Part shown: one piece after another, positions 32,401 to 63,483 of the stretch
How the letters are laid out: each line of letters starts with the position of its first letter
Numbering within the stretch: the first letter of the stretch is position 1
Assembly (NCBI RefSeq): GCF_947568905.1
Contig: NC_079164.1
Location: 9,486,001 to 9,550,000, forward strand
DNA: 64,000 bases
Direction: 5' to 3'
From: Ostrea edulis
Lineage: Eukaryota
Position numbers and translations under genes: made by a program
The notes under the pieces: model-generated
Database searches by the model: none
What the model saw: the letters and a program-made list of their open reading frames with translations, nothing else
Told to the model about the DNA's origin: nothing

Positions 32401-35400
32401 TGATTGATAGGACAGACATTAAAGTGCAATTAGTCAGTCTATTAATCAAAACTAATGAAAGATGTGAAATTGATTTATAATACTGTGGTATAATCTCATT
32501 TCTTGGAGAGAAAAGATCAGAAGATACAATACTTTACTGCAACTTCAGTTATTCAAAGTCCCAAGATACCTGCTCACAATCAAGAATTTGATTCAAGCAC
32601 ACTTTCATTTTACTCCATTTATATACCAATTCAAGTTTGTTAAAATCATGGCCTCCAGGGGTAAGATGGGGCCACAATAGGGGACCAAAGTTTTACACAC
32701 AATATACCGGTACATGTATAGGGAAAATCATTAAAAAAAAATTTCTAAAGAATCACTGGGCCAGAAAAGTTTACATTTACATGAAAGCTTCCTTACATAG
32801 TGCAGATACAAGTTTGTTAAAATCATGGACCCCGGGTGTAGAATGAGGCCACAATAGGGGATCAAGGTTTTACATACAGAGTGAAAATCTTTTTCTCAAG
32901 AACCATTGGGCCAAAGAAGTTTACATTTACATGACAGCTTTCTGACATAGTGTAGATTCAAGTTTGTAAAAATCATGGCCCCTGGAAGTAGGTTGGAGCC
33001 GCAATAGGGATCAACATTTTACATGCAAATATTTAGGGAAAATCTTCAAATATGGGCCAAGGTGAGCGATGTGGCCCTTGGGTCTCTTGTATTAGTGGAT
33101 GAATGTTAAAAAAGATCCTATCTGATGGAGATGTACTTCAAAAATGAATGTAATATTACATATGTATGGAGGTCTATTGAAATTAATCCCCATCTATCTT
33201 TATGGAAATTTTTCAAAATTCATATTAAAAATATCAGTAAAAAATTGTTACTCTTTTTGATTAACTCAGCTGAGATTTAACTAAGATCGTTTTGAGAAAT
33301 GTAATTTGAACAAAATCTCAACTAAGATAAAAACTCAGACTTAAGTTGAAACTGAGTTTAAGATTTGAGATTTTTTCGAGAAATCCAGGGCAGAATATCA
33401 GCATTTCAGTCATAACTTAAGATTTGTTCATGAAAGTTCAGAAACTCCCAACAGTTTGAAAGAGTGTTTCAAAATTTTATTTACAGACCACGAAATGGAA
33501 ATATTGCTTCGTTATTGCCAACAACAAGTTCAGATCTTCCATGTCCGAAGTCCACACGGATGCCGTCTTTTCTACGACCCGGAGAGGAATGACCAGATGC
33601 TACTGGAACCACTAAAACAGGAACTTTTTGGACCCGATCAGTTTGAACAACTGGAGTTCCCTCAGTGTGAGACAACCAACCCTGGTCAAGAAGAACACAC
33701 TTATAAACTTCTGACGGCATTAGACAGGGGGATGCTTCTGGAATGCCACAATGGCAATATCTATGCCACTCGAAAATCAAGGTGTGTACCTTTTTTTAAT
33801 GAACTAATATATAGTATAACTGCTATACGACATACTGCCATCCGACATTACTGCTATCAGACATTACTGCTATTTGGTATAACTGCTATATGGGATAACT
33901 ACTGTATAACTGCTATTTGGTATAACTGCTACAGTGTGGGTTGTAATCTTTGTGGTACTGTAAAGCATGGGTTTTTTCTGTGGGGTGATAATTTTTGTGG
34001 CTTAATTTAGTGGTTTCTGGTGCCATATATTTAGAACCCAAATCAGTTGGGTTTTGTTTTGTTTGTTTTTTTTTGTCAAGGATATGCATGTAGCACTCTT
34101 CAGTTTGGGAGGATAATAAACTATAGGGTGTTTTTTTCTGTCAGTTGTTTCTGATGATGGTAAAACATTTTACAGATAAATAATAAACACTACAATGCTT
34201 ATCAACTTTTATGTTTGGAACTCCTTGTCTGCCAAAATATATTCCGCTAAAATTATTTGTATACCTATGAGGTAGAAAATCATCAAATTTCACACCCGCA
34301 GAACAAAACCGCTATAGGGTATTATTTCATTGTACCTACTTGATCATAGCTAAAGTCCGTAAACATCGTTTTTGAAACATGTGAAATGACAAACACAATC
34401 TGTTCTCAATCTTTGTGGAGTCCTTGTTTAGAAATGGGAATAGGTAGTTTTACTCACCCGAGCTATAAGCGTGAGTCAACTTCTGATTGCTTGTCTGGTG
34501 TCCATCTGTAAACTTTACACGTTTCACTTCTTCAGAACCAGAGGTACCATGAGGATCCGGGTTAGAATATGTCTTCAGTGCCCCCTTGTTTGTCATAAGA
34601 GGCGACTAAATGGGGCGGTCCTCCGGATGAGACTGCAGAAACCAAGGTCCCGTGTCACAGCAAGTGTGGCACAATAAAGATCCCTCTCTGCTCAATGGCC
34701 ATAAGCGCCGAGCATAGTCCTAAATTTTGCAACCCTTCACCGGCAGTGGTGACGTCTCCATGTGAATGAAATTTTCTCGAGAGGGACGTTAAACACTATT
34801 CAATCAATCAATCAATCAGAACCAGAGAGCCGTTTTCAACAATATTTGCCATAAAGCATCCTTAGGTAGATGAAATTCAAAATGACATGTTTCAAATCGG
34901 ACATAAATATACCTGTAACTAAAAAATCTAGTGGCCTCTTTTAAATATATTCTTCTCAAGAACCACTGGGTCAGAGGGGACAAAACTTGTATGAAAGTTT
35001 CCTGAATGAGCATGATGAGTGGAGATTCAAATTAAGCAAATCATGCCCTTCGAGGTGGGACCACAATAGGGGATAAAAATTTTACGAGGAGATATATATA
35101 TACATGTGAAGCTAACTCGTACCCAGAGAGATTCTATTATAACTATGCATTAAGAATAAATAATTTATAAAAGATAATAAGAAAAAAATATCAACACAAA
35201 AAACATGTAAATGAATGAACACTATAAAAATGAAATAAGAACAAAATTAGAGAGAAAAATAATGTAAATAACAAGTTTGAATAGGTAAACAAAGTGGACC
35301 AACTCCAAACAAAAACAAAGAATAAGCAGCCTAGGAAATTGTATCAACATCAGACATTCCCGTACTGATCATGTCTAGGGTAGACTATATATAATTTCAC

Positions 35401-42938: not shown

Positions 42939-43118
42939 TTAGTAATAGATGTATATGATATACAATTTAGAGCATTATTGTTTTTCGATTGTGCTGTTGA
43001 TATACAACATACGATATCTAATGTCGACAGATTCCCACACGAGCAAATCTTCATTTGTACATGCCTGTAAACTGTATGGTTTTATGCTGATAAACTGAAC
43101 TGGACTTAATATACCGAC

Positions 43119-43456
43119 AGTAGTATAAGGCGTCCCGATAGGGGGTTCAACTGAGTGCACTTTTTATGCAAATGAGGTCAAGTAAGGGTGTTTTTGATTG
43201 GTCAAGCGGTGTCGGGGTCAACGGAGTGCACTAGGACGGGGTCAACCCCAGCAGGGGTTGTAGAGCGGGTGAATAGGCTGGCCTATGGCCGCTGGTCTAT
43301 GATGCGGTACTTTCGCTTTGAGTTCCTGGAATGAGTTCCTGCTATTTTTCTGAAAATCCAGTGAAATCCTGTGTATTAAATCTAAAAGAATAACAGTGTA
43401 TTAAATCTAAAAGAATAACACAAGGTTTTAAGTTGACATGTTTATTAAAGAACAAT
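43119..43456 (+). repeat. Left terminal inverted repeat (338 bp)
   Basis: Reverse complement of 62897-63234 with no mismatch found by eye; extends 7 bp further with one mismatch; contains a 25-bp tandem duplication at 43371-43420. Confidence 0.95.
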
Positions 43457-43556
43457 GGTACAAGCATAGAACAATGCAAAACAATTCAATAAACATAAAA
43501 ACAGTTCAATAAGCATAAAAACAGTTCAATAAGCATAACAGTTCAAGCACAGTCCA

Positions 43557-44474
43557 TTACTTTCTGCTGAGTTTCTTCTTCTTTTTTGGCCGTTCTTCAG
43601 TAGGTGCGGTTGGATTCCACATCTCTAACGGTGTGTATTCTCTCTTCACAGGGGATTTTAAGCCAGGTACGGACCCAATCATCGCATCTATCTCCGCTTG
43701 TTCTTCTGGACACTCACTAATCCAGTGTCCTATTTTTCCGCATTTGAAGCAAGGATCCTTTTGTTTGGTTTTCTTGCTGGTCTGTTGAGAATCTGCTGAC
43801 CTCGATTTCTTACTGGTCTGCGGATAATCTGTTTTCTGTGGGCAATCCGGCGACCAATGTCCTGTTTCTCCACACGTGTAGCACGGGTTAGCAGTGTAAT
43901 CTGGAGTGTATTCCTTCCTAGGTTTTTTAGAAGTCAGCTCTTCCAGCTTCTTCAGTAGGATTGTGGTATGATTTCCAATCTCATTACTCAACACATTAAT
44001 GCGGTTAACGATCCCGTCTAGTGTCGTGGTAATGATGGCGAAATCGGTCCTGCTCATGGGGGAATCTTCTCCACCGAAGGGGGGTTTATCGTATAAGCCC
44101 ATCTCCAGTCCCGTAGCATCCTGTGAATCGGGAAAATAGAAGCCTAATCCGGGGTCTGTCGGATTCTGGCTAGGGAGGTAATCCGAGGTCTGGGCCATCT
44201 TCTCTTGTCGAGCAACGTGGTCTGAAGGCGTGAGATTGAAGCTCGTGGTCTGGTTCGAGGTCTGGGCCATCTTCTTCTCTTCTCTTCTTCTTTGAGGAAG
44301 GTAGTCTGGAGACGTGAGCAAGAAGTTCGAGGTCTTCCCCAGTTCAGTCTTCTGATCGTCAGTCTTAGCTTTCTTCAGTTCAATGTAGTCTTTCTGTGGT
44401 CCCATCTGCTTCTGTACCAGCTGATCTATTTTCTTCTGAGCTTTGTCCACAAATTCTAGTTGTTTCTGAGCCAT
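43557..44474 (-). CDS. Polinton accessory protein with two CCHC zinc knuckles and a C-terminal NLS
   Basis: CYTCGETGHWSPDC and CFKCGKIGHWISEC; ends RPKKKKKLSRK; TATAAAA at 44533-44527; AATAAA within the left TIR. Confidence 0.8.
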   Translation of the reverse strand: MAQKQLEFVDKAQKKIDQLVQKQMGPQKDYIELKKAKTDDQKTELGKTSNFLLTSPDYLPQRRREEKKMAQTSNQTTSFNLTPSDHVARQEKMAQTSDYLPSQNPTDPGLGFYFPDSQDATGLEMGLYDKPPFGGEDSPMSRTDFAIITTTLDGIVNRINVLSNEIGNHTTILLKKLEELTSKKPRKEYTPDYTANPCYTCGETGHWSPDCPQKTDYPQTSKKSRSADSQQTSKKTKQKDPCFKCGKIGHWISECPEEQAEIDAMIGSVPGLKSPVKREYTPLEMWNPTAPTEERPKKKKKLSRK

Positions 44475-44759
44475 GTCTTCTGGAAGGTGATTGAAGATCG
44501 AATGAGGACTGACACTGGGGCTCCGCTTTTATAGCCAGCAAAATGTCTAGACTATTCTGTCTCGTGAGGGGCACGTGGGGAGCACGTGGTTGCATCATCT
44601 TTTTCTGGAAAAACCGGTTTCAGCTAGAACATCGCGCGACCAGCGCGTGCTAGTGCACTAATTGAACTTGAAAAGCCGGTTTCTCGCGACCAGCGCGTGC
44701 TAGTGCACATTGGTACACATTGACTTTAGTGGAATGGAACTTATATTGGTGTTTAAAGT

Positions 44760-44775
44760 AGCCCTAAAAAGGGCT
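44760..44775 (-). terminator. Histone-type 3' stem-loop downstream of the Rep-like ORF
   Basis: Minus strand reads AC-AGCCCT-TTTT-AGGGCT-AC, 19 nt after the stop codon at 44795. Confidence 0.7.
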
Positions 44776-44794
44776 GTGCATGAAGTTTTTATTT

Positions 44795-45301
44795 TTAAAA
44801 ATGGCCGGCTTCATACGCAGGTTCTTCTATATACACGTGTAAGTCATGATCTTCGGATATAATGTGTTGTACTAATTGTCGAGCTCTTCTCCCGGGGAAA
44901 CGTATCTCTTCGACGGTTTCCCACATCCAGTGTGCATCCCAAAACATTACCCATACACTTCTCCGGTAACGTGGTTTCTCCAGTCGAATAAATCCTGATA
45001 CTTTTTGAGTGCCGTTCAATAACGTGTAAAACTGGTAAATCATGTACTGTATGAGGGGGGAATTTTTCAGGTACATGTCACTTAAACGCAGGTAAATATC
45101 CTCCACTGTTTCATGTGACCGCAATACATAGTCAAAACACCAATTTTTAGATCGCCCCCAGCGTAATCGATGGCGACATCTCTGTACTAAATTGTCCCAG
45201 ATCCCCATCTCGTCTACATAATCTTCTACTATGGTTAAATTCTCCACTGGTTGTATTCCCTGGCCGCGGCGTCTCGCTCTTAAAATTCTCCGTGTATCCA
45301 T
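44795..45301 (-). CDS. Degenerate CRESS-virus Rep-like (HUH-fold) protein
   Basis: KNWCFD ... IQYMIYQ ... GTQKVSGFI ... DAHW aligns by eye with nanovirus/circovirus Rep motifs I and II; the catalytic His and Tyr appear absent. Confidence 0.55.
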   Translation of the reverse strand: MDTRRILRARRRGQGIQPVENLTIVEDYVDEMGIWDNLVQRCRHRLRWGRSKNWCFDYVLRSHETVEDIYLRLSDMYLKNSPLIQYMIYQFYTLLNGTQKVSGFIRLEKPRYRRSVWVMFWDAHWMWETVEEIRFPGRRARQLVQHIISEDHDLHVYIEEPAYEAGHF

Positions 45302-45340
45302 GACTGAAGGTCAGACAAGAATGACTGTAGAAAAACCAGC

Positions 45341-45416
45341 TGACGTACAGGTGTTTGATCACGTGGTGCAGGTGTTTGATCACGTGATGCATAACCTTTA
45401 CCTATAAATACAGGTG
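45341..45416. promoter_or_regulatory. Divergent promoter with duplicated E-box module
   Basis: CAGGTGTTTGATCACGTG x2 (45348-45365, 45369-45386); TGACGT at 45341; TATAAATA at 45403-45410. Confidence 0.55.
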
Positions 45417-45440
45417 TTTTCTGAACGTTCGTTATTTACT

Positions 45441-45773
45441 ATGGGCGGCAGTGCTACTACGAGAATAAATGGATATAGTTATGTACTACAATGTATGAAC
45501 GTGGCCTTACATAATCCTCACATTCAAAATGCTCGTCAATTTGTACAACAGATGTCACCGGAGGTCAGAAATGTACATAGTTTTCAACGGATTGCTGATT
45601 CATTAGCGGAGAATACCAATACGGGACGTTTACTCATGATTTATTTGTATGCTGAGGAATTGAAACAGAATCTTCCAGACCAGATGAGTGACATTGATCG
45701 GATCTTACGCGATTGTTTACAAAAAGGATTCGTGGAACTGATTCGTATGAAAGGAATGGCTGCCCTGTTATAA
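45441..45773 (+). CDS. Bcl-2-like small helical protein, paralog A
   Basis: FQRIADSLAENTNTGRLLMIYLYAEEL resembles a BH1 region (FxxIAxxL...NWGR); first ATG after the TATA box. Confidence 0.55.
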   Translation: MGGSATTRINGYSYVLQCMNVALHNPHIQNARQFVQQMSPEVRNVHSFQRIADSLAENTNTGRLLMIYLYAEELKQNLPDQMSDIDRILRDCLQKGFVELIRMKGMAALL

Positions 45774-45810
45774 AACAAGAACGTTTTAGAATTTTTTCAT
45801 TTTGATCATC

Positions 45811-46164
45811 ATGGCTGAATTGAACAACAACGTTCTTACCGCTGTATTACAGTATTTCGAGGACTACAAAGAATCGGTGAACAACGCTCGTAGCGCTGCA
45901 TTACAGTGTATCAAGGACTGGAAAGAAAAACAGCCGTTGAGATATAAATTCGCCATGAAGTTGTTGATCTTTTGGGAATTTCCTATGACCTTATATGAAT
46001 ATTCCAGCGTTTGCAAGCATATAGCCGACAACCTGAACAGAGAGTCTGGATTGATCATGATTTATACCATGGACCAAGAATTTAGACGACGGGAACCTGA
46101 GAAGACTGGGGCGATTGTAGCGATTACCGATCACTGGTTGGAAAAGGTGTATAAAAAAACCTAA
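45811..46164 (+). CDS. Paralog B of the small helical (Bcl-2-like) family
   Basis: Shares FPMTLxEY...LIMIY...EF...PE...I..I...WL..VY with paralogs C and D. Confidence 0.6.
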   Translation: MAELNNNVLTAVLQYFEDYKESVNNARSAALQCIKDWKEKQPLRYKFAMKLLIFWEFPMTLYEYSSVCKHIADNLNRESGLIMIYTMDQEFRRREPEKTGAIVAITDHWLEKVYKKT

Positions 46165-46192
46165 CCGTTTTCTTTTCCTTTATTCCTGGAGG

Positions 46193-46540
46193 ATGGCCAG
46201 CAGTGACAACATCGCAGAAAAAGCGCATAACCATGCATTAGAATGGGTCGAGAAAATGCAAGACGATACGGTGTTTCAAGCTGTTAAAAATTATCTGATA
46301 GCGGGGGTGTTTCCAATGACTCTGGACGAATATACAGATCTACGGAACCGGATATACATCAATCTCTATAACGATGCGGGATTGATGTTAATTTATGTTG
46401 TGGGGGAGGAATTCAAGAAACGCATGCCTGAAAAAATCGCCGAGATTGAAAGTATCACCAAGGACTGGCTTCGAGAAGTATACATAAAGTGTGAAGAACT
46501 TAATTCATTTCATTTATTCCCGGAGGATGGCCAGCAGTGA
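46193..46540 (+). CDS. Paralog C of the small helical (Bcl-2-like) family
   Basis: FPMTLDEY...GLMLIYVVGEEFKKRMPEK...WLREVY. Confidence 0.6.
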   Translation: MASSDNIAEKAHNHALEWVEKMQDDTVFQAVKNYLIAGVFPMTLDEYTDLRNRIYINLYNDAGLMLIYVVGEEFKKRMPEKIAEIESITKDWLREVYIKCEELNSFHLFPEDGQQ

Positions 46541-46832
46541 CCACATCACAGAGAAAGCGATAGTTTATGTATTGGATTATCTCACAGACATTCATTCTGG
46601 GCAGATTGAATTTGTGTTACACTATATGCGAGAAGAATTATTTCCCATCAGCTTAAAGGACTATCCATGTCTCTGTCAGTATTTGATCGAGAACCGGATC
46701 ACCCCGCAAGCCTTAGTATTGATTCATTTAATGGGCCGGGAATTGAAACGAATTCGACCCACAGACAGAGCAGAAATCGAGAAAATCAGACTACGATGTC
46801 TTCGAGAGATGTACGTCAAGTTAAACGTGTGA
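46527..46832 (+). CDS. Paralog D of the small helical (Bcl-2-like) family
   Basis: Starts MASSDHITEKA, a DNA-level copy of the paralog C start; FPISLKDY...LIHLMGREL...CLREMY. Confidence 0.6.
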   Translation: MASSDHITEKAIVYVLDYLTDIHSGQIEFVLHYMREELFPISLKDYPCLCQYLIENRITPQALVLIHLMGRELKRIRPTDRAEIEKIRLRCLREMYVKLNV

Positions 46833-47014
46833 CTTTTAATCTGGATCATAATGAAGTGTATCTGTTACCCGAAGAAGACCGGACAAGTATCTGGATGACT
46901 GTAGCCGCTGATCGATATCGATTTCAACGCAGGATTCGAGAAATGGGAAAAATGTTGGACCCTATTTTAAAAAGACATGTGCATTGGTGTTGTGTGTGGG
47001 AGTTATGTATTTGA
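46796..47014 (+). CDS. GADD34/ICP34.5/DP71L-like PP1-targeting protein (72 aa)
   Basis: KRVTF (RVxF) followed by WMTVAADRYRFQRRIREM, matching the PP1/eIF2alpha-binding module; AATAAA at 47028-47033. Confidence 0.8.
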   Translation: MSSRDVRQVKRVTFNLDHNEVYLLPEEDRTSIWMTVAADRYRFQRRIREMGKMLDPILKRHVHWCCVWELCI

Positions 47015-47450
47015 AATATGTGACATGAATAAAATTGTTTACACGAAAGCTGTGTTTGGTTGAGTCTCTCAGAGAAGGGTTTATTTGTTGAGGAATCCAG
47101 AAAATCCTAAAGGTAGAGTGAAAATCGAATCAATTAAGGTGTTTTCTATCGAATAGACCTTATGAGATGTTTTTAGGGATGTACATGGTCGAGAAATAAA
47201 TTTTTAAAGAGGCGGTGAAGAAACATTGAACCTCGACTCGACCTCTTTAACCGCTGTTTCTTTGAAAACTATGCGACGTAGCAAAATAAAAATAAGTTTA
47301 ACGCATTCGCCGTCTCAGAATCTATCAGATTAAATCTACCTTGCACAGATATCGAATGTCTAGAAAAAGACAATGAGAAAAAAACTCTCTACTCGAAAGC
47401 ACAAATCCGCCATTTTGACGGCCACCATCTTGGCTTCGTCTCCGAAGCGA

Positions 47451-47571: not shown

Positions 47572-48360
47572 ATGGCTACAAGAAGAGACCCGCTCTACAA
47601 TTTCCAGACCTTGCCTGGCTTTCGGTACCGGCTGGTAGTGGTGGCTGAGGAACGGGTAGGGGAGAATTGGGTTGTGCGTTCTGAGAACGACCTGAGCACC
47701 TTCTCCCCTTTCGACCAGAGTGGGGTCCGTGAGATCATCTGCCGGGTGCGGGCCGAGTATGAAGGGAGGGCACCCCGCCGCCGCACCGCTCGAATCTCCA
47801 CGGCCACGAGACCGCGCCGACGGGCCCCACAGCCACCCTCACCACCACCACCTTACTCCCCGGCGACGCCTACAACACCACCACCAGCGATCCCATCGGC
47901 ACCAGTGGAATACAGCCCGGTGCCGATGAGCGACTCACCAGCGTCACCGGTGGAGTATTCACCGCGGTCACCGTCCCCCGCACCACCTCCCAGTCCAGCC
48001 CAGAGTCCGTCGCTGTTGGTGGCAGCTACGTCATCACCACCGAGACCAGCAGCCCCTGCAAGACCCCCACCACCTACCATCCGGTTTGCAGGGAGGACTC
48101 CGCCACCGAGACCAACCCACGCACCGGTGGCAACTCATCCCCCGAGGAACCACCCTATGACTGTCCCTGGCTGGGCAGATAGGGCGGTTCCCATCTGGTT
48201 TAAGTGTCCTGTCTGCTGGCAAGACAGGGTACACTCTGGAATTACGTGTAGGGGATGTGGGCAGCGCCCAGCTTGCTGCTCGTGCGTGGAAGAGTTACAG
48301 GAGCGGCGACACACCCGGGGACGGTGCCCGTTATGCCGGTTTACCGGAAGCAGGGAATGA
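47572..48360 (+). CDS. Proline-rich protein with PPxY motif and C-terminal RING-like finger
   Basis: PPPPYSP; CPVC...CRGC...CCSC...CPLCR. Confidence 0.75.
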   Translation: MATRRDPLYNFQTLPGFRYRLVVVAEERVGENWVVRSENDLSTFSPFDQSGVREIICRVRAEYEGRAPRRRTARISTATRPRRRAPQPPSPPPPYSPATPTTPPPAIPSAPVEYSPVPMSDSPASPVEYSPRSPSPAPPPSPAQSPSLLVAATSSPPRPAAPARPPPPTIRFAGRTPPPRPTHAPVATHPPRNHPMTVPGWADRAVPIWFKCPVCWQDRVHSGITCRGCGQRPACCSCVEELQERRHTRGRCPLCRFTGSRE

Positions 48361-48510: not shown

Positions 48511-48699
48511 TTACATTTTCTTGACAATGTAAACATGTTTATGATACTGATAAGCAAAGTCACAAATCCATCGTCTATAATGAGTCCAATTGCCTCCGGC
48601 TAATCCATGAGGTTTCACCGTTAAACAGTTACATTGTTGTACAATAGCATCCACCCAAGGTAGAGATAATACATCTCCTCGTAGATCCGTCACCGACAT
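48511..48699 (-). CDS. Hypothetical 62-aa protein
   Basis: Its ATG overlaps the stop of the upstream Cys-rich ORF; minus-strand AATAAA at 48474-48469. Confidence 0.35.
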   Translation of the reverse strand: MSVTDLRGDVLSLPWVDAIVQQCNCLTVKPHGLAGGNWTHYRRWICDFAYQYHKHVYIVKKM

Positions 48700-49091
48700 G
48701 CTGGTTGACAGGTCTCACAGGTACACGTTAACCGGGGTTCTTGACTGTAAGGACAATGTTGAAACAGCCGGGGATCAAACTTTCTCTGAGTCCAGCGCTC
48801 TCTAAACTCCTGACAGATCTCACAGGTACAGTCCTTATGTGCTATTTCTTCTTCAGGGGTGATGGTACAATGCTGCGGACACTTACACGGTAGCCAGGGT
48901 TCTCTAGTGTGACTACAACATTTATAGACAAAGGGATAATACGTCAGCTCTGCCAATCTCTCTATCCACTTCTGTTTGGCCAGGATGTTTTCTTTTTTAT
49001 AATGAAAACACCCACAAGTGCTCCAAGGTCCTCGGCAATACCCACACACTAGTACATCTTTCTCATCGTCCGCGTACCGTTCAAACGACAT
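48690..49091 (-). CDS. Cys-rich protein with three C-x5-P-x3-C-x-C repeats
   Basis: CGYCRGPWSTCGC, CSHTREPWLPCKC, CPYSQEPRLTCTC; upstream TATA-like, TGAGTCA and TGACGTCA elements. Confidence 0.65.
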   Translation of the reverse strand: MSFERYADDEKDVLVCGYCRGPWSTCGCFHYKKENILAKQKWIERLAELTYYPFVYKCCSHTREPWLPCKCPQHCTITPEEEIAHKDCTCEICQEFRERWTQRKFDPRLFQHCPYSQEPRLTCTCETCQPACR

Positions 49092-49265: not shown

Positions 49266-49562
49266 ATGAGCCGTAGAGTAGGACCAGACCCTACAGTGAA
49301 TGATTATTGTATCAAATGGGAGGAGGATTGGGAGCAAGAGATTGCCCCGCCGGCCTCACGGGAGGCTCTTCCCCCACCGCCCATGAGCCAGGATCTGCCC
49401 CCGCCAGAGGAAAACTGGGACGCAGAGTTAGAAGTGGTGCAACGGCCTCCGGGGAGATTGTTTTTTAAACACGGCTGGTTGCCCGTTTTTGTGTTTGACC
49501 ACGAGCAACCCCCGGAGGAGCAGAAAAAGAAGAGAAGAAAGAAGAAGAAGAACAGACAGTGA
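49266..49562 (+). CDS. Hypothetical 98-aa acidic/Pro-rich protein with a basic C-terminal NLS
   Basis: ACCATG start downstream of the repeated promoter; ends KKKRRKKKKNRQ. Confidence 0.6.
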   Translation: MSRRVGPDPTVNDYCIKWEEDWEQEIAPPASREALPPPPMSQDLPPPEENWDAELEVVQRPPGRLFFKHGWLPVFVFDHEQPPEEQKKKRRKKKKNRQ

Positions 49563-49673
49563 GGGGGACCGAGAAGAAAAGAAGAGAAGGAGAAGAGAAG
49601 AAGAGAAGGAGAAGAAGGAGAAGAGAGAAGAGAGAAGAAGAGAAAAGACCAAGAACAGAGAGAGAAAGAAAAC

Positions 49674-49694
49674 AGCCCTTTTCAGGGCTACCCA
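49674..49694 (+). terminator. Histone-type 3' stem-loop with compensatory A-U first pair
   Basis: AAAAC-AGCCCT-TTTC-AGGGCT-ACCCA; GAAAGA at 49703-49708. Confidence 0.85.
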
Positions 49695-49792
49695 TTCTTT
49701 TTGGAAAGACATGGTTGATTACAATGACAAGAAATTTTTTTTTTTCCAACGTTTTATTAAACTCCAACTATGAACAATAACAATAACATAGT

Positions 49793-50290
49793 TTACAATA
49801 CATTCAGTCTTTGACATTGACAAGTTTGTCCTTGATGGGTTCTCGGTTTACGGAAGGTCTCTTTAAACCAATCCGCCACAAAACGATCGCGTTGTAAGGC
49901 CGTGCCTTTCCAGGGAAGTAACCATTCTCGTACGGTGCTTCTATGGCGATGGCGTTGATGTAAAAAATACACACAGTATTGTCCACAGACATCCGTATTC
50001 AAATCTTGATAACAATGGGTGTTATGAATCCAAGTCTCTCCGTGGCGTTGAATAAAGTCTTGGATGTCTTTATGGCTGGGGGGTAATCCGTAAGAATCAA
50101 AATATTCGACGGTAGGGCTACTCAAATACAAACAGACCCAATGCGCTCCAGGGCGATCGTGAGGGTCTGTATTCACCACGATGGCTTTGTGATGAGGTAA
50201 CAGCTCAGGTATGACATCTCGAGGATACACACCTGCAAACGCCGGTCCTAAATCTCGTTGTAAAACATCTCTCAATTGCTGAGTATCCAT
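49793..50290 (-). CDS. Adenain-like cysteine protease (Polinton PRO)
   Basis: NTDPHDRPGAHWV, YFDSYG, YQ...DVCGQYC (His/Asp/Gln/Cys catalytic motifs). Confidence 0.93.
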   Translation of the reverse strand: MDTQQLRDVLQRDLGPAFAGVYPRDVIPELLPHHKAIVVNTDPHDRPGAHWVCLYLSSPTVEYFDSYGLPPSHKDIQDFIQRHGETWIHNTHCYQDLNTDVCGQYCVYFLHQRHRHRSTVREWLLPWKGTALQRDRFVADWFKETFRKPRTHQGQTCQCQRLNVL

Positions 50291-50297
50291 CTCTCTC

Positions 50298-51701
50298 TTA
50301 GTAATCGATGCTGACTTCTCGTTGTTTGTTGATTTCTAGCAGATTGTCGAACACGGCATACACCACACAGTTTAAGGTCCTGGCTACGTTGGCGGCAAAT
50401 TGCACTTCCACTCTCAAGTTCCCCGTCTGTATGAGATGAAATTTATCCGTCTGGGCTTCTTGATCTTTCGTGAAATCCACACACCAGAGGGTGTAACCGT
50501 TTTTATACTCTTCTAGGGTAATGTCCGGAGCCCAGTCCTGACCTAATTTTCCCAAGCCTTTGTACAGACTCAAATACGATCTCAGGTACTGATCGTCGGT
50601 GAAATTAGGTTCCAAAGGTCGGGTTTCCATCATTTCTCCATTGATACTGATTTCTAATTTCTTGACTCTCTCATTTTGGAAATGAAAGGGGTTTCTGGTA
50701 TTATCCCCATTAAAAGCCGCATTGTCCACAAAACCCAACACGATCAGTTTAGGCATCTGTCCTTGAAACAGATGATCGGTGATTTTAGATTGGGTGCCAC
50801 TAGGAATGGTGAAGGTTTTCACTTCCACTCGTCTCAATGGATATTTCGCCGTTTGAGTACTCAGTTGCTGATTGATGAGATTAATGATACTCGGCACAGG
50901 TTTGACTTTCCTCACCCACAAGATCATACTTTGAATGACCACTTTCCCACTACTCCCGGCAGCGGTCATCATGTAGAACTGGGGTCGAGCGCGATTGAAT
51001 CTGAGACGGACATCCAAACCATTAGGGAGACATTTCTCTTGCTCAAACAAATCCAGATGTAATCGATCCATCAACACGATCTCCTTACTGTCTGTAATCT
51101 TCTCGTGACGTTTTCTCAACCCTACATTCTTGGAATCATCCGGATACTCGGGAGTCGGGATGACGGCCGCGATGCTGATTTTGTTATTCAGTACTGGAAA
51201 TTCCACAGGAGTTTGAGCCAGAGCTTCTAATTTGACCTCATCCATATGTCCTGCCGTATCTTTTTCCCACAAGCTACAGGCTCTCATCTGGGTTTCCAGA
51301 GTCTTGGGTGCATAAGACAACAATTTCTCCAGATACGCTTTGTAGGGATAAGTATCCGTCCCCGGGGTAATGACTTTTCCATTGAGACTGACATCGATTT
51401 CACTGAACAAGGAATGGAGAATGTTATTCACGGGGGTGGAGGTCGAATGGCCTCCTGCGAGATTCGTTCCATTGGCTTTCGTGAATTTACAGACCATCTG
51501 GAGATAAGTTTGGGATAAATCCAGATATTCATCTCCTTGTCCTTTGATTTCAAATTCAATCGGAGCCGTATCCGAGTTGAGGGTACTGGAAATGGGGTAA
51601 TATTCCATCCATTTCGAATCTTCTAAAGTGACGTTGGTCGGGGGCACTTTAAACAGTTCTAAACTGCTGGTACCACAAGCGCAAGATTCTCTGTGCATCA
51701 T
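50298..51701 (-). CDS. Double jelly-roll major capsid protein
   Basis: 467 aa; [52 protein letters not shown] are typical Polinton MCP motifs. Confidence 0.92.
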
Positions 51702-52647: not shown

Positions 52648-53643
52648 TCAATACACTTTGCGGAAATGAAGTTTGACTAAGGAGCGCCCATTTAAAAACC
52701 CCATAGGACGCCCTAAAGAATTCATGATGTGTACCTCAATGGTATCGAAATATTTCTTACTCAGTTTCAAATATTCGGCTCGAATCGGTTCCCAACGGGC
52801 TTGTTGTCGATCGTCGTATTGACCCGTACAGGGGACGACTCTCAATAATTTCAATTTGTTGGTGCCCACCACTTGAGGATCCACAATGTCACAATACACA
52901 TACATGGCTTTCAGATTGTCGTAGACATCCATGGTCGTGTTCCCCAAGTAATTCACGTTGATCCATTTCGTCATGGTTTCATCGCCCAGGATCATTTTGT
53001 CACTATCCAGACCTAGCTTGTACGCTAAGGGTGTAGGGAAACGAATGCACATGGGGGTGGTTCTCAGTGCTTTCCCATTAAACTGATACTCGACACGATC
53101 GTACTCGGGGTGATACACTAAGATCTGGTTGTTCCCCTCGTCGTTAGGATTCCCTAACTCACTCCATACTTTCCACAGGGTTCTCCTTAAGGCTGCGTTG
53201 ATTTCATTGATTAACGCCAAAGGTTGTGTATAAGCTCCGGGTCGGAAGTGAATGCGAATGATATCGAAGGGAAATAAACTATCCCCTCCCGCAAAGAGAT
53301 GGGACCATGGCGTCAGATCCCAGGGGACCACCACCTCACACCTGGCCATCGTGACTTTACCCATATTCTCTGTCTTAAATCTTTCCCATTTATAAGTGTT
53401 GGGATCTTGGACATGTTTCGTATACGGATCTGGAATGAGAACGTCCACATAAGCCTCGCTATCCGATACGTTTTGTAAGTTGGCCGAGTACATCATTTCG
53501 GTCAATCCGACTTCCCATGCTCCATCCGTTAAGTCCATGGTGTGTGGCAATAACGTTTTAAATTGAGCAGTCGTATTCGTCGGAAACGATTCCATCGAAC
53601 CATCACTCAACAGAGTCATGTAAAACCCTTCTCCTCCAGCCAT
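52648..53643 (-). CDS. Minor capsid (penton-like) protein
   Basis: FYMTLLSDGSMESFPTNT, WEVGLTE, MYVYCDIVDPQVVG, LLRVVP, LHFRK; TATAAATA 38 nt upstream. Confidence 0.88.
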   Translation of the reverse strand: MAGGEGFYMTLLSDGSMESFPTNTTAQFKTLLPHTMDLTDGAWEVGLTEMMYSANLQNVSDSEAYVDVLIPDPYTKHVQDPNTYKWERFKTENMGKVTMARCEVVVPWDLTPWSHLFAGGDSLFPFDIIRIHFRPGAYTQPLALINEINAALRRTLWKVWSELGNPNDEGNNQILVYHPEYDRVEYQFNGKALRTTPMCIRFPTPLAYKLGLDSDKMILGDETMTKWINVNYLGNTTMDVYDNLKAMYVYCDIVDPQVVGTNKLKLLRVVPCTGQYDDRQQARWEPIRAEYLKLSKKYFDTIEVHIMNSLGRPMGFLNGRSLVKLHFRKVY

Positions 53644-54218: not shown

Positions 54219-54498
54219 GGTGAACTGATGAATCTGAAGAAGATCGTTCCTGTTTTATACTCGGGCTCGCTAACGTCATTTGTGGACTAGGCATGACGTA
54301 GCCCACCAAAGAACTTAAGGTCACCATCCAAAAATCGCGATTGGGATCGCCTAAGGCTAACATGACGACCGAAGTGATAATGATGGTTAAACACAGGAAT
54401 AATTGTGCAAAATACACAATTTCTGCTCGAGGGACTTTTTCACCCAAGAAAGTCCACTGGTTGGTCATGGCCGAATGAGATCCGCTTGCGGAATCCAT
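54211..54498 (-). CDS. Small protein with two predicted TM helices
   Basis: IVYFAQLFLCLTIIITSVVMLALG and FWMVTLSSLVGYVMP. Confidence 0.65.
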   Translation of the reverse strand: MDSASGSHSAMTNQWTFLGEKVPRAEIVYFAQLFLCLTIIITSVVMLALGDPNRDFWMVTLSSLVGYVMPSPQMTLASPSIKQERSSSDSSVHHG

Positions 54499-55550
54499 GA
54501 ATCAAAACTGGGAGGATATCCTTTCCAACGCACTTTGACTTCTGAAATGACTTTTTTTCCCACACGCCGCTTTTTATACCCTAAGATTTCTTCCACTTCA
54601 TAGACATCATCGTCTTTAATCACTTGTTGTAATTCCTTCTCGTAAAACGTTCCTTCTAATTCTTCCCCGTGATCATCTTGAATACGATAGACGTTTCGTC
54701 CTGGCACTTTTCTAGAGATGGTAAACAGTTCTTTGGTCCAATTCGGTAAATATCCTTTTTCAAACGTACGTTTGGCTTTACTAATGCGTACACGATCCCC
54801 CACTTGCAAGCGACTCGTGGTATCGGCACTCTGTTTTCCATACAAGGTTTTCCATACGGTCAAGACATTCTTGGCATTGACTTGAGCAGGAGCTCGCCGG
54901 ATACTGCGATGATAGGTATGATTGTAACCATACACCAGATCCCCCAAGACATCGACATACCGTCGTGTTTTATGACGTGTAAAATACCGCCACATGCGTG
55001 CTTTCAGCGTGCGTTGAAAACGTTCCACAATACTGGCTTTGGTTTCGGCATTACGGGTCGTAAAGAAATGAATGGATTTGAAGGCTTGACGAAATTCTTT
55101 ATTGGTAAATTCTTTTCCTTGATCGGACTGAATGCGCACGGGGCGACGTCCCTCTCGAAAAATCCGTCGTAAGCCTCGTATCATTTCTTTCCCCGTTTTC
55201 TGTTTTAAAGGCACGACCCAGGCATATTTAGACAGCACGTCAATGGCACATAATAAAAACGTATACCCATTATTGTCTTGTTTCAAGCTGGAGACATCGG
55301 CTAAATCTAATTGCCATTGTTCATCCATATCCGTCACTCGTGTTTGTCGTCGCTTGAATTTCCTCCGTATCGGTTTATGCAAGGTATAGGTATCTTGAGC
55401 TTTCACCCATTCTCGAATTTGAGACAGGGTAATCTTGTGTCCTAATTGACGCACTTGACGATACAACGCCTGGACTCCCCCATACCCTGTCTTGGGATCG
55501 TAATACAGTCGCTGTAAGATCTGTTCTGCTTTCATGGTAGATTTAACCAT
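54465..55550 (-). CDS. Retroviral-type (RVE/DDE) integrase with C-terminal chromodomain
   Basis: QWQLDLAD, IQSDQGKEF, ASIVERFQRTLK; YEVEEIL...VRWKGYPPSFDSWIP. Confidence 0.95.
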   Translation of the reverse strand: MVKSTMKAEQILQRLYYDPKTGYGGVQALYRQVRQLGHKITLSQIREWVKAQDTYTLHKPIRRKFKRRQTRVTDMDEQWQLDLADVSSLKQDNNGYTFLLCAIDVLSKYAWVVPLKQKTGKEMIRGLRRIFREGRRPVRIQSDQGKEFTNKEFRQAFKSIHFFTTRNAETKASIVERFQRTLKARMWRYFTRHKTRRYVDVLGDLVYGYNHTYHRSIRRAPAQVNAKNVLTVWKTLYGKQSADTTSRLQVGDRVRISKAKRTFEKGYLPNWTKELFTISRKVPGRNVYRIQDDHGEELEGTFYEKELQQVIKDDDVYEVEEILGYKKRRVGKKVISEVKVRWKGYPPSFDSWIPQADLIRP

Positions 55551-57587: not shown

Positions 57588-58241
57588 TTATACTCTCGGG
57601 GGCATGTGCACAGCCAAGTTGGTAAAGAGTTGACTTCTTAATCTTAAATCGTCCGACGTCTGAGGACTCAAGTCCACTAGTAAATACCCGTGAGGTACAC
57701 GGGTGGCGTCCTCATAGGCTGGAAGTAAATGCGGCATTTGTAATTGCCGACTTAACACCCCAATCTGAGATTTATCTCGAGGATTTTTAAACAGCACAAG
57801 ATAGTGAGCATTCAGACTGATGGTACGATGTTGTACTGCTCGATCAAACAGATTTTGTGTGATATAAATGACACTGGTATTGCGATGATGCGCTTTGCGC
57901 GTAAACCAGTCGACAATCGATTCGATGGCTTTACCTCCCATCATATCATCAAAAATGAGTAGATGACGCGTACTGAGATCCGCCACTATCTGCTCATCGT
58001 CTTGAGGTATATTGCGGATAAAAGTGACCTTGTCCTGTAAGGATTCGTACGCGGACTGCCATTCTCGATAACACCATACTATCTTTTCGGGAGGCGGTGC
58101 AATCCACTGTGTATTTTGCACCAGTTGCTTGACAAATTCTGTTTTACCCGATTTAGAGGGTCCAGCCACCACCATGGTAAATTCATGTTTCAACTGAAAA
58201 GGTTCAAGTGTCTCGTAGGTATACATCTTGATAAATGACAC
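57588..58241 (-). CDS. A32/FtsK-type genome packaging ATPase
   Basis: Walker A GPSKSGKT, Walker B LLIFDD, RKAHHRNTSVIYITQN. Confidence 0.93.
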   Translation of the reverse strand: MSFIKMYTYETLEPFQLKHEFTMVVAGPSKSGKTEFVKQLVQNTQWIAPPPEKIVWCYREWQSAYESLQDKVTFIRNIPQDDEQIVADLSTRHLLIFDDMMGGKAIESIVDWFTRKAHHRNTSVIYITQNLFDRAVQHRTISLNAHYLVLFKNPRDKSQIGVLSRQLQMPHLLPAYEDATRVPHGYLLVDLSPQTSDDLRLRSQLFTNLAVHMPPRV

Positions 58242-58266: not shown

Positions 58267-58794
58267 TTAACAAATAAAAATACGTACAGCTTGCTCAACA
58301 CTATGTCTACAAATAGGACATTGTTTCAGTCCCGTAGCACATATAGCACAAGTACATAAATGACCACAAGGTAAAAAAGCAATTCTCAAGTCTCGTTCTA
58401 AACAAATGTGACATTTCTGGGTACACATTGGATTCCCTGCCGCGTCTAAGGGTAAGCCTTCCCAATCGCAACCACTGTCTTTAGCGCGGGCATAGGCATT
58501 GAAGGCTTGTCGTACCCATTGTTTACCCTTATTACACTTCAGGTAAGGACAGTGAGGATACCAATAAGCATGTTGTATCCAAGGATTGTCGACAGCTCCC
58601 CAATGGTGAAGTCCAAAGTTGCAATAAAAACAGCACGTGTTATCCCCGTACCCTTTGTAAAAGTATCCCGCTTCTGCAATGGTAGGTAATAGGTTCTGCA
58701 AGTGTTCGGGAGCATTTTCAAACGACGTTACTCGATCTGACAGTAGAGCATAACGTGGTGTACCCGGGTTATGTAGTGATTCGTAGTCCGTCAT
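58267..58794 (-). CDS. Inhibitor of apoptosis protein (one BIR plus RING)
   Basis: DRVTSF...AEAGYFY...CCFYC...W...DNPWIQHAYWYPHCPY (BIR); CHICLERDLRIAFLPCGHLCTCAICA...CPICR (RING). Confidence 0.92.
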   Translation of the reverse strand: MTDYESLHNPGTPRYALLSDRVTSFENAPEHLQNLLPTIAEAGYFYKGYGDNTCCFYCNFGLHHWGAVDNPWIQHAYWYPHCPYLKCNKGKQWVRQAFNAYARAKDSGCDWEGLPLDAAGNPMCTQKCHICLERDLRIAFLPCGHLCTCAICATGLKQCPICRHSVEQAVRIFIC

Positions 58795-58829: not shown

Positions 58830-61800
58830 TTAATACCCGTAAGGCAGCGTGTCATAGTTATGAATACGTTGACGTTTATCATACACCATGCGGTATTTCT
58901 TCACCAGAGGAATGGTTCGCACATCATGTTGGCGGGTTCGTTGAATAAAGTGCGGATAGCTGACATGGACTTCTTCTTCTTCTCCTTTTAACATTTTTTC
59001 CAACGTATCGAGAGACACGACTCTAGAGGCACGATAATTGAGTGTCAATCCTTTGACTTTGCAGACAGATTTTTCCCCCTGGGTCTCGTATGCATAATTT
59101 TTGGGCCCGCCCGACATGTACTTGATGATACGATCTCCACCCAATTCATCGGTCCAGCCGCCTAAACTGTTGATAATGGTCGGATTGAACTGGGTCTCGT
59201 CGTGCTGATAGATGATACTATCCGTGTCAAAGTATAAGACACGCTCTCCCAAAGGCTGTAACGTCTCGTACAAATGTAAACGAGCATGAGCTGTTGTAAA
59301 ACACGCCAGCACCACGTTTCCAAAGGGACAGTCTTCTAAAAATTCTTCTTTCTCCTGATAATTGATCAGCATCATATCACATTCGGGGCGTTCACGATTT
59401 TCTAAGAGTTCGATGCCTTTGACTTCTAAAGTGGCATCTTGTAATTTCTGTTGTAATTCTTCTTCTTCCGTGAGATACAGGGATTTGGGTAATTGTAATC
59501 GTTGAGCAAATTTTCCCCACAAACAATTTAAAAAGAGTTTGGCAATGGTTCTTCGGACCGGATTTTTCTGGATGTCTGCCGGATTCATGGCAATGCCTTC
59601 TCGTTGCTGAATTTCCTCAATGTAATGTTGCTGCTGTTGGGCTGTTTGACAATCCTCGGGGAATCCGGAAGCTTCTTGTTTAATTTTCAAAAAGGTGTTG
59701 ATATACGCTCGAAATAAGTGGTCACTGGTTTTCTCAAAATGCCAAACTTCGTAAATGCGGTCGAGACGATAGCCTAGATCTAATGCTTTGTGAAGTTCGG
59801 TGGTCACCCAGGTGCCCGTGAGACTGCGTTCAGAATCGGTGTGCTGGCACCGCTCGTCGGGTCCTAAGTTGCGCTGTTCCGCACAGGTGCGGCATAAGGG
59901 AAAGAGTAATTTACCCCCGGTCTTGTAAGGTAATACGGGGTGATACAGCTCTCGGGGTGGGAGGACACGACAACGAATGAGCCCGAAATAGTCTCTGACA
60001 TCGGTGAAATGGCTGGTGATGACTTGGGGATGTTGGACGGGAAATGGCTTGTATTTCAACACGTACGGGTACAGGGAACAGACATCCACGTATCGCATGT
60101 CACCCTCCTCACAATACAGTCGTGTAGCATTGGTCCGGCCTCCGTACAAAGCGTCACGGGGATTCAAAGGATCTTGTATATCGACTCCTTGTAAAAATTC
60201 CTGTAAGTCGGGATTGGTCTGGGTCTGACGATCAAACTCGTGTTCCCATATGCTCACGACTGTATAGCCTTGGTCTTCTAAAGCACTGGCTCGTTTTAAG
60301 GTGTCCAGGTAGAGGTCTTGATACGTATGCTGAACACGATGAGGATGCATGTCAGTCAACAGATTCGGGAAACAGGTGGGACAGCCGTGCCAGTAACAGC
60401 CATAGAATTCGTACACGATACGAGATTCCTCATCATACCCATCTACTGTATAGGGTCCAAGCGTGACTTCGCCCCCATTTCTAGCATGTCGTATGCAGTG
60501 ATGTTGATGTTCTAGCCAGGCGAACCATCGACAAGCTTTAGCTGAATATCGTCGTGCTGGCCGGTAGCCCATATTGGGAATGATGGCGATGGTATTTTCA
60601 ACCATGAATCCTCGTCGGTAGGCTAAATTAGCCGTGCTGGCAAACGTGATGGATTCTTGAAAGGGGTCTACTTCCACCAGATCAAACAGGGTGGACTTGA
60701 AATGGGCACAACACCGGCGTAAAATATCCACATCCGAGATGCAGTAAGCTAAGAATTCTTTCTGGAAATCAAAGACTTTGCCCTCTTGTTGATGGTACCA
60801 AGTATAGAAGGCTTCACGATTGGCGGTGGACATATCGTCAGGATTGTAGAAATGAGCGGCCGGGTAAGGACCCACATACTGCTGGTTCTCTGTCGTGTTG
60901 AAAAAGTGCGGGAAATATCCTTTTTTCAATTCCGTTAATCCGAAAGCAGAGGGCATCTTGGCAAGAGCAAAGGGTAGAAAGTTGTAAGAATCGATGAATC
61001 TCAACCCCAAGACTTGCATGGATAAGATTTTACTGCCGTTCAGGATGACGGTGGGTTTGATACACGCCGTGTGAACCAGGTAATTCAAAATAAACTGCCC
61101 ATCGTATCCTTTGAAATTGTGGGCAATGATGGTGGCTTCATCGTGTTTGAGTTCCACATGGCCTTGCTCATCGGTCTCGCTCTGTAAGAGCCATTCCATA
61201 AACTGTTTTAACGTGTCGGGTCCTTGAAATAGGAAGCGGCGTTGTGATCCGAATCCTTCACAATGAGAACAGGGCTTGTCGATATCCACACTGTCGCAAT
61301 GTTGACACACACGTTCTGCCACGCATAAATTGGGAATGTGAATACCGTTTTCCTGACTGCATTCGAAATCGTAATAAATGTATATTTTCAACTCCTCTTC
61401 TTCTTCTTTTTCTTTCTTAGGTTTGGGTTTCGTCTGTACAAAGCAGTGATGAGGCATGGTGACGACTTTGTGACAGATGCGGCATTCGGTTTGACCCCCA
61501 CACGCGTGGCGTTTTAATAATTTCTTGGACATCCATTTCTGACACTGGTTACAACGCCCCATTAAACTGCAGACCGTGGTCGTTGTATTACTGCTGTAGG
61601 GTTTTAAATGGTTCTGGTAACAAGCTGCATTTCTGAAAAATCCCTTACAATGAGGGCAATTCGTCTGAGTCCCGTCCGGGGTACAGGGGGTATCGGCTAA
61701 ACAAAATGAGCATCGATGAGGACAGACGGTCCGATGATCTTCAATGTGACTGTAACCAACATCGCAATAATCGCAATAGTATCCGTTTTCCGTCACTCCA

Positions 61801-62792: not shown

Positions 62793-62896
62793 GATGTCGA
62801 AAGTGACACCCAATGCACCGCGCGCCGCTTTATATATATTACCTGTAGACAGCGCTGGGTAAAACTAGGGACCGTGCCAGCTCTGGGGATTGTACT

Positions 62897-63234
62897 ATTG
62901 TTCTTTAATAAACATGTCAACTTAAAACCTTGTGTTATTCTTTTAGATTTAATACACTGTTATTCTTTTAGATTTAATACACAGGATTTCACTGGATTTT
63001 CAGAAAAATAGCAGGAACTCATTCCAGGAACTCAAAGCGAAAGTACCGCATCATAGACCAGCGGCCATAGGCCAGCCTATTCACCCGCTCTACAACCCCT
63101 GCTGGGGTTGACCCCGTCCTAGTGCACTCCGTTGACCCCGACACCGCTTGACCAATCAAAAACACCCTTACTTGACCTCATTTGCATAAAAAGTGCACTC
63201 AGTTGAACCCCCTATCGGGACGCCTTATACTACT
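62897..63234 (-). repeat. Right terminal inverted repeat (338 bp)
   Basis: Reverse complement of 43119-43456. Confidence 0.95.
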
Positions 63235-63483
63235 ACCGACGTATCAAGCACGTGGAACCAGGATGCTGATCCTTCACTTTTTTGACAACGTTCATTTTCA
63301 AAAATTATTATTTTCATACACAAACTAAGTTAATTTCACATGTGAAATAAGATTAATTGGCGGATTGGCCCCCATATCCCATTCTCTTTGGTGATAGTAA
63401 TGAATGGTAAAAATGTAATAATGAATGAACTGATGGATTGAAGAACAAACGAAGCCCCCTCGCTCCAATTTATAGGAGTAAGA

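Follow-up and report, generated by a model that had tools for sequence, protein, structure and literature searches.

Four tandem small proteins, probably of a cut-down Bcl-2-type fold, encoded by a Polinton of Ostrea edulis

What kind of protein is encoded four times in a row in a Polinton of Ostrea edulis, and what might the element use it for? The question is raised by a stretch of 64,000 nucleotides (contig NC_079164.1 of the NCBI RefSeq assembly GCF_947568905.1, positions 9,486,001 to 9,550,000 of the forward strand), hereafter called the window, whose positions are counted from its first letter. Within a Polinton that covers about 20 kb of this window, four adjacent open reading frames (ORFs) on the plus strand, here named A to D, encode proteins of 101 to 117 amino acids (Table 1). 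They lie in the accessory arm of the element, among genes for host interaction and not in the capsid module. A first reading of the DNA, the original prediction, took them for a quartet of diverged Bcl-2-like proteins, expanded in the manner of an accordion for immune evasion, with the poxvirus A46/A52/K7 class cited as a precedent for innate-signalling antagonists. In the analysis described here, the quartet belongs to a single orphan family, most likely with a cut-down and very diverged Bcl-2 fold; the accordion and the poxvirus class have not stood up.

An old array of diverged paralogs

Kinship among the four proteins is apparent at several levels. In pairwise Smith-Waterman comparisons, all six pairs score above every one of 1000 shuffles (z 6.0–24.6). 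B and C are 37% identical over 97 residues (E 4e-18) and C and D 35% identical, in both cases over nearly the full length; the identity of A to B, C and D (25–36%) is confined to the C-terminal half. Nine columns of the four-way alignment are invariant, among them the core that all four share in the last two helices; an FP..L..Y stretch recurs in B, C and D. When a profile of A-type proteins is aligned by hhalign with one of B/C/D-type proteins, the two match over 90 columns with a probability of 98.1% and an E-value of 1.2e-13. To judge from these alignments, A, B, C and D are true paralogs, homologous to one another. To this extent the original prediction was accurate: the four adjacent ORFs, the core, the FP..L..Y stretch and the mutual similarity, whose absence it had named as a possible refutation, are all found.

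The same can be said of the near-identical DNA that it reported at the starts of C and D, where 28 of 29 bases agree. The resemblance is local: the two genes agree at 93% of the nucleotides in their first 30 coding bases, but at 55% over the whole. Transcription is expected to start some 30 nt past a TATA box, and the shared stretch begins at about that distance from each box, placing the expected start of transcription there. It may thus represent a common leader that selection or gene conversion has preserved. The accordion-like expansion proposed for the family is another matter. Protein identity among the paralogs is 25–37% and DNA identity 49–55%; A, B and D are each kept at 85–95% identity in other copies; only these 29 nt are near-identical, and no further copy turned up across the 64-kb window. 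The divergence of the paralogs and their separate conservation contradict a recent amplification, and by these comparisons the array is old and stable. Poxvirus genomic accordions also consist of tandem host-interaction genes with varying copy number, but they are made of recent, near-identical copies, unlike the quartet. A variation in number does exist here: one relative, P0120 (229 aa), joins B-like residues 1–116 to D-like residues 129–229 in a single ORF with a 12-residue spacer. D directly follows B in this copy, without C, and the size of the array thus varies between close relatives.

The arrangement of expression signals is equally regular. Seven TATAWAW boxes occur on the plus strand of the Polinton; four of them are in the quartet block, and three of these four precede the start codons of A, B and C at similar distances. 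An imperfect TATA-like box is found ahead of D. A pattern scan of positions 45300–47200 finds AATAAA at 45464, 47028 and 47195 and ATTAAA nowhere; the AATAAA at 47028 follows shortly after the end of the block. This layout suggests a set of nested messages with one 3' end. Ahead of A, in a divergent promoter region, a 21-nt unit with an E-box occurs twice.

Outside the window, when 1.84 billion representative proteins were searched in full with HMMER, just 28 came back at E up to 0.001. The matches whose sequences were read are small members or fragments of the same orphan family, with two exceptions. One, P0019 (732 aa), repeats a unit of about 61 aa, similar to the central part of an A-type protein, 11 times in tandem, and could have arisen as a satellite-like array from a piece of a gene; the other is a 195-aa protein with two domains. 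Eight relatives were retrieved with the quartet profile and 80 more by a word search seeded with D-type relatives; their sources are ENA, JGI or Logan assemblies, and no informative name is attached to any of them. The family divides into an A-type and a B/C/D-type. Its best-conserved columns, shared by 94–97% of 108 members, occupy three places: the end of helix 4, the proline with which helix 5 opens, and helix 5 itself. The relatives of A are 110 aa long and 91–95% identical to it, those of B are equal to it in length and 88–91% identical, and five full-length relatives of D, at 85–88% identity, stop at the same position as D. A word search of the databases with C alone found no relative; the best relative of C is 58% identical over 50 aa. 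A-like and B-like cluster members come from contigs of equal length, which hints, short of proof, that they occur on the same contigs. Paralog A begins with Met-Gly and has a small or hydroxyl residue at position 6 (45441–45461), as do several of its relatives, the glycine being absent in other A-type proteins; we take this start pattern to be compatible with N-myristoylation.

How far the likeness to Bcl-2 extends

The case for a Bcl-2 fold is built mainly on paralog A. Residues 23–94 of A match positions 8–87 of the 100-position Pfam profile PF00452 (Bcl-2) with an E-value of 0.0066 and 17.4 bits, and three of 24 family members match this profile at E up to 1. The AlphaFold (AF2) models of A and C both have five helices, with predicted local distance difference test (pLDDT) values of 83.3 and 82.1 and predicted template modelling (pTM) scores of 0.78 and 0.75, respectively. 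When the model of A is compared with the PDB by Foldseek, each of the top 24 matches is a Bcl-2 family chain, with query-normalised template modelling (TM) scores of 0.40–0.62 and probabilities of up to 0.99, and they represent five distinct proteins: ORFV125, BAK, MCL-1, BCL-XL and BFL-1. With the model of C, Bcl-2 family chains account for about half of the top 50, interleaved with unrelated helical proteins; the best compact matches are MCL-1, M11, F1L, BCL-XL, BAX and CED-9 (TM up to 0.57, the first three spanning 0.39–0.57). In BFVD, the best match of A is the annotated Bcl2 of a lancelet adintovirus, a protein of 197 aa, and the match is weak (E 1.0, TM 0.41).

A considerable body of observations weighs against a Bcl-2 assignment. 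At the sequence level, the score of A falls well below the PF00452 cut-off of 31.4 bits, and B, C and D do not match the profile and have no Bcl-2 signal of their own. Sequence searches of the PDB with the quartet profile, with A alone, with the B/C/D profile and with the whole-family profile brought up nothing significant. The sole Bcl-2 protein that an A-type profile retrieves from the PDB is FPV039 of fowlpox (E 0.17), and its placement is ambiguous, as the same query stretch falls on two parts of the chain, at 3.8 and 10 bits, in a HMMER test for the Bcl-2 homology (BH) motifs BH1 to BH4. Among the HMMER matches that were read, none has the canonical Bcl-2 size and none forms a bridge to the cellular proteins. 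The most conserved columns of the family coincide with the turn between the last two helices, which is not where the BH motifs are expected. A C-terminal membrane anchor, a trait of most Bcl-2 proteins though not of all, was sought in A to D and none was found, the highest Kyte-Doolittle averages over 19 residues being 0.71–1.06. The structural evidence has shortcomings as well. The Foldseek E-values of A range from 0.13 to 1.2, so that even the best is short of significance, and those of C are 2–5 with a probability of at most 0.41. Both models have five helices, versus seven or eight arranged about a central hairpin in the Bcl-2 family. Moreover, MCL-1 and BCL-XL chains number in the hundreds in the PDB, so that many Bcl-2 rows do not amount to as many independent observations, and the alignments from which AF2 modelled A and C have sequences in common.

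On balance, the Bcl-2 assignment put forward by the original prediction survives as the best available structural reading, sustained by the Pfam match of A and its unbroken series of Bcl-2 chains; it lacks any test that is significant by convention, and three of the four paralogs give it no sequence signal. The check that had been proposed for it, AlphaFold followed by Foldseek, came out likewise: Bcl-2 chains rank first for A and fill about half of the list for C, at E-values of 0.13 at best. Taking the evidence together, we consider it moderately probable that the fold is truly of the Bcl-2 type.

The kinship with poxvirus proteins of the A46/A52/K7 class has to be given up. Among the 50 best structural matches of A and of C in the PDB there is no A46/A52/B14/K7/N1-type protein; apoptosis-type members (ORFV125, BAK, MCL-1, BCL-XL, F1L and M11) are found instead, and we reject the A46/A52/K7 proteins as closest relatives of the quartet. 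The same absence speaks against a functional version of the idea, in which the proteins have a Bcl-2 fold with no part in apoptosis, the fold serving as a scaffold without a BH3 groove for antagonists of innate signalling. Vaccinia N1 is a soluble, anchorless protein of about 117 aa, and poxvirus genomes carry many diverged paralogs with a Bcl-2-like fold. The quartet, with its several small, soluble paralogs free of a membrane anchor, recalls this multigene set, and an interferon-regulatory-factor gene fragment in the host flank indicates that signalling of this type exists in the host. Given what the structural searches returned, we nonetheless regard signalling antagonists of this kind as distinctly unlikely.

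Among the closest known parallels are the viral Bcl-2 homologues ORFV125 of orf virus, F1L of poxviruses, M11 of gammaherpesviruses and FPV039 of fowlpox, which like the quartet are small helical proteins of DNA viruses whose sequences hardly resemble cellular Bcl-2, if at all. The first three are the nearest structural neighbours of the A and C models. In comparison with them, the quartet proteins are shorter (101–117 aa, five predicted helices), are devoid of a hydrophobic tail and remain below the thresholds of significance.

A phosphatase recruiter behind paralog D

The ORF that overlaps the end of D in another frame, which the original prediction had missed, provides a second line of evidence on what the array might do. 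Its 72-aa product matches the Pfam profile PF10488 (PP1c_bdg) with an E-value of 9.7e-06 and 25.9 bits, 0.2 bits short of the cut-off of 26.1, and, in the PDB, PPP1R15B (E 1e-4) and the 71-aa chain of DP71L from African swine fever virus (E 1.6e-4). By virtue of these matches we assign it to the PPP1R15/DP71L-type module that binds the catalytic subunit of PP1. With PPP1R15A and PPP1R15B (GADD34 and CReP), DP71L and ICP34.5 of herpes simplex virus, which recruit PP1 for the dephosphorylation of eIF2-alpha, it has in common the RVxF motif and a conserved stretch downstream, and it is of DP71L size. What sets it apart is its position, overlapping the last member of the array, and the fact that it is found fused behind a D-type domain elsewhere. 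In P0016 (148 aa), residues 9–89 match residues 10–92 of D (E 6e-13) and residues 95–145 match the recruiter (47% identity, E 1e-16), in the same frame. A D-type domain and an RVxF tail occupy one frame in 11 relatives, including P0016, P0035, P0048, P0049, P0063 and P0099. Set against these fused proteins, the window shows one shift of frame where the domain passes into the tail, and neither ORF is broken by an internal stop. The separation is not a private lesion of this copy but a common state, because the five full-length close relatives of D share its stop and 44 of 64 distant D-type relatives end no more than 15 residues past their last conserved helix, the other 20 going on.

The fused relatives are also the starting point for a quite different account, in which the domain is new and not descended from Bcl-2, its likeness to Bcl-2 is a convergence of small helical bundles, and its native role is that of an N-terminal targeting or regulatory domain in a PPP1R15/DP71L-type adaptor through which a virus directs eIF2-alpha phosphatase, with A, B and C as tail-less paralogs that regulate or diversify it. 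That domain and tail share a frame in 11 relatives is what one would expect on this account, and so is the overlap of the tail ORF with D in the window, where a TATA box sought within 60 nt of the recruiter was not found. The lack of any Bcl-2 sequence signal in the B/C/D-type and whole-family profiles, together with Foldseek E-values that all exceed 0.1, points the same way. More than twice as many D-type relatives stop early (44) as continue (20), however, the five full-length close relatives of D share its stop, and DP71L, which stands alone at 71 aa, demonstrates that the tail needs no extra domain. The account also leaves unexplained why three methods (Pfam, Foldseek against the PDB, and BFVD) agree on Bcl-2 for A. 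We consider it rather unlikely. A more modest explanation would have the four frames decaying, non-functional or coding for minor virion components, with no role in host interaction. The missing functional annotation and the uninformative names of all relatives speak for it. Against it, many variants at 85–95% identity keep the ORFs intact and equally long, the TATA boxes are regularly spaced, the AF2 models are confident, and the genes are surrounded by host-interaction genes and not by the capsid module. It is highly improbable.

The explanation that we favor is that the quartet comprises small, soluble five-helix proteins of an orphan family, with a cut-down and diverged Bcl-2 fold, that bind host death-pathway or signalling partners alongside the IAP encoded by the same element, D doing so together with the PP1 recruiter; taken as a whole, we would give this proposal an even chance. 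Besides the paralogy and the fold likeness, it is supported by the IAP and the PP1 recruiter of the element, by the relatives in which domain and tail are fused, by the presence of promoters and a poly(A) signal, by ORFs that stay intact at 85–95% identity in relatives, and by the Bcl2 and IAP homologues reported in adintoviruses. On this proposal, the quartet would be transcribed as nested messages with a common 3' end, and its products would bind their partners so as to keep the cell alive during replication of the element, acting beside the IAP. The D-type paralog would act jointly with the recruiter, by which eIF2-alpha phosphorylation would be reversed, the pair being made as two overlapping products or as one protein, as in the 11 relatives. 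A bolder variant is that a viral adaptor for eIF2-alpha phosphatase took up a miniature Bcl-2-fold domain, as its partner or at its N-terminus, so that one small locus would both block cell death and reverse the integrated stress response, and that the tail-less A, B and C diversified toward other host targets. The coupled locus would then consist of one frame in some lineages and of two overlapping frames here. Both parts of this variant, considered jointly, seem unlikely to us.

The Polinton and its place among viruses

The element that carries the array is a complete Polinton, with PolB, integrase, ATPase, protease and terminal inverted repeats (TIRs) all present, and the Polinton setting named by the original prediction is thus correct. 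Its core-gene ORFs are all open, with no internal stop counted, and its G+C content is about 0.45, versus about 0.35 outside. Two candidate genes for the double jelly-roll major and minor capsid proteins have no Pfam match, and the one of them that was searched against the PDB (50298–51701) has no sequence match there. A clean target-site duplication was looked for at both ends and none was seen. The IAP that adjoins the polymerase gene matches solved IAPs with E-values as low as 7e-28. Coordinates of all features are collected in Table 1.

Table 1. Features of the window, in positions counted from its first letter
Feature	Position	Strand	Remarks
Paralog A	45441–45773	+	ORF; 110 aa from ATG; most diverged of the four
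Paralog B	45811–46164	+	ORF; 117 aa
Paralog C	46193–46540	+	ORF; 115 aa
Paralog D	46527–46832	+	ORF; 101 aa; last 37 nt shared with the PP1-recruiter ORF, which is read in a different frame
Putative PP1 catalytic-subunit recruiter, PPP1R15/GADD34/DP71L type	46796–47014	+	72 aa; RVxF motif; frame open from 46667; frame −1 relative to D
C start region	46179–46207	+	From about 30 nt past the TATA box through the first five codons; 28/29 identical to D
D start region	46513–46541	+	28/29 identical to C
TATA box of A	45403–45409	+	TATAWAW; 38 nt upstream of ATG
TATA box of B	45769–45775	+	TATAWAW; 42 nt upstream of ATG
TATA box of C	46150–46156	+	TATAWAW; 43 nt upstream of ATG
TATA-like box of D	46479–46489	+	Imperfect; about 46 nt upstream of ATG; read from the sequence
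E-box repeat	45348–45391	+	21-nt unit, two copies, each with CACGTG; within the 139 nt of divergent promoter that separate ORF 44795–45301 (−) from A
Poly(A) signal	47028–47033	+	AATAAA; taken as the sole one downstream of the block; 14 nt past the recruiter stop
Polinton/Maverick (adintovirus-like), whole	43105–63248		20,144 bp; TIRs and Pfam gene set
TIRs	43105–43463 and 62890–63248		359 nt; 98% complementary
Protein-primed PolB	58830–62813	−	Pfam
IAP	58267–58794	−	175 aa; BIR and RING; Pfam E 1.7e-15; adjoins the polymerase gene
A32-type (packaging) ATPase	57588–58241	−	Pfam
Integrase	54465–55550	−	Pfam; rve and chromo
Adenovirus-type protease	49793–50290	−	Pfam
Capsid candidates	50298–51701 and 52648–53643	−	No Pfam match
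CCHC zinc-knuckle ORF	43557–44474	−	305 aa; E 3e-15; just inside the left TIR
Cysteine-rich ORF	48690–49091	−	133 aa; no family match
Proline-rich, RING-like ORF	47572–48360	+	262 aa; no Pfam match
Histone 3' stem-loop	48378–48423	+	Rfam RF00032; 40.2 bits; 18 nt past the stop of ORF 47572–48360
Histone 3' stem-loop, weaker	49669–49714	+	RF00032; 30.8 bits; after ORF 49266–49562
Histone 3' stem-loop, weaker	44734–44780	−	RF00032; 22.3 bits; just past ORF 44795–45301 (−)
25-nt tandem unit	43371–43420 and 62933–62982		Two copies per TIR arm
20-nt unit	43478–43546		Three copies; just inside the left TIR arm
IRF-3-type association domain	33456–34010	+	Open frame; E 5e-18; host flank, about 9 kb from the Polinton
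tRNA-like matches	6735–6806 and 6970–7046	+	Rfam, 41.8 and 37.2 bits; no tRNA called there by ARAGORN

Several neighboring features deserve mention in their own right. Two minus-strand ORFs, one with a CCHC zinc knuckle and one rich in cysteine, may be further accessory genes. A plus-strand ORF beyond the recruiter encodes a protein with a proline-rich middle and a cysteine-rich, RING-like C-terminus, and is followed by a histone-type 3' stem-loop; weaker stem-loops of the same Rfam family are found next to two other ORFs. From these matches, some accessory genes of the Polinton seem to use histone-type, non-polyadenylated 3' ends, which would tie them to S phase. Short tandem units are found within both TIR arms and just inside the left one. 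In the host flank, the IRF-3-type domain places the insertion near an interferon-regulatory-factor gene and, like the histone stem-loops, is a sign of an animal host, and the tRNA-like matches in positions 6735–7046 may be tRNA-derived host repeats.

Parallels for such a gene set come from adintoviruses, which encode homologues of Bcl2 and IAP according to a statement in the text of Starrett et al. (2021, PMC8502044). The kind of element, an animal Polinton-like virus, and the functional class are the same as here, and the present Polinton likewise carries an IAP. In the literature searched for Polintons with Bcl-2, PP1-recruiter or histone stem-loop genes, this one sentence on Bcl2 and IAP, in the main text of that article, was the only mention found. 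Compared with the annotated Bcl2 of the lancelet adintovirus, the locus described here has four tandem mini-paralogs of an orphan family, of which A matches that protein weakly. Neither a PP1 recruiter of this type in a Polinton nor the combination of a D-type domain with a PP1 tail was found in the literature searched. Three features appear to be new: the mini-family without known kin, its array of four old paralogs, each gene with a promoter of its own, and the link to a DP71L-like tail.

Polintons have long been regarded as transposons. A gene set that includes an IAP, four probable Bcl-2-fold proteins, a DP71L-like recruiter and genes with histone stem-loops looks like that of a virus actively managing the death, stress-response and cell-cycle pathways of its host. 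A concrete functional hypothesis follows from the way the helical domain is paired with a PP1 recruiter. Should the fold assignment prove true, the family would be among the smallest Bcl-2-like proteins known, and several of the countermeasures of large DNA viruses would already be combined in a 20-kb element.

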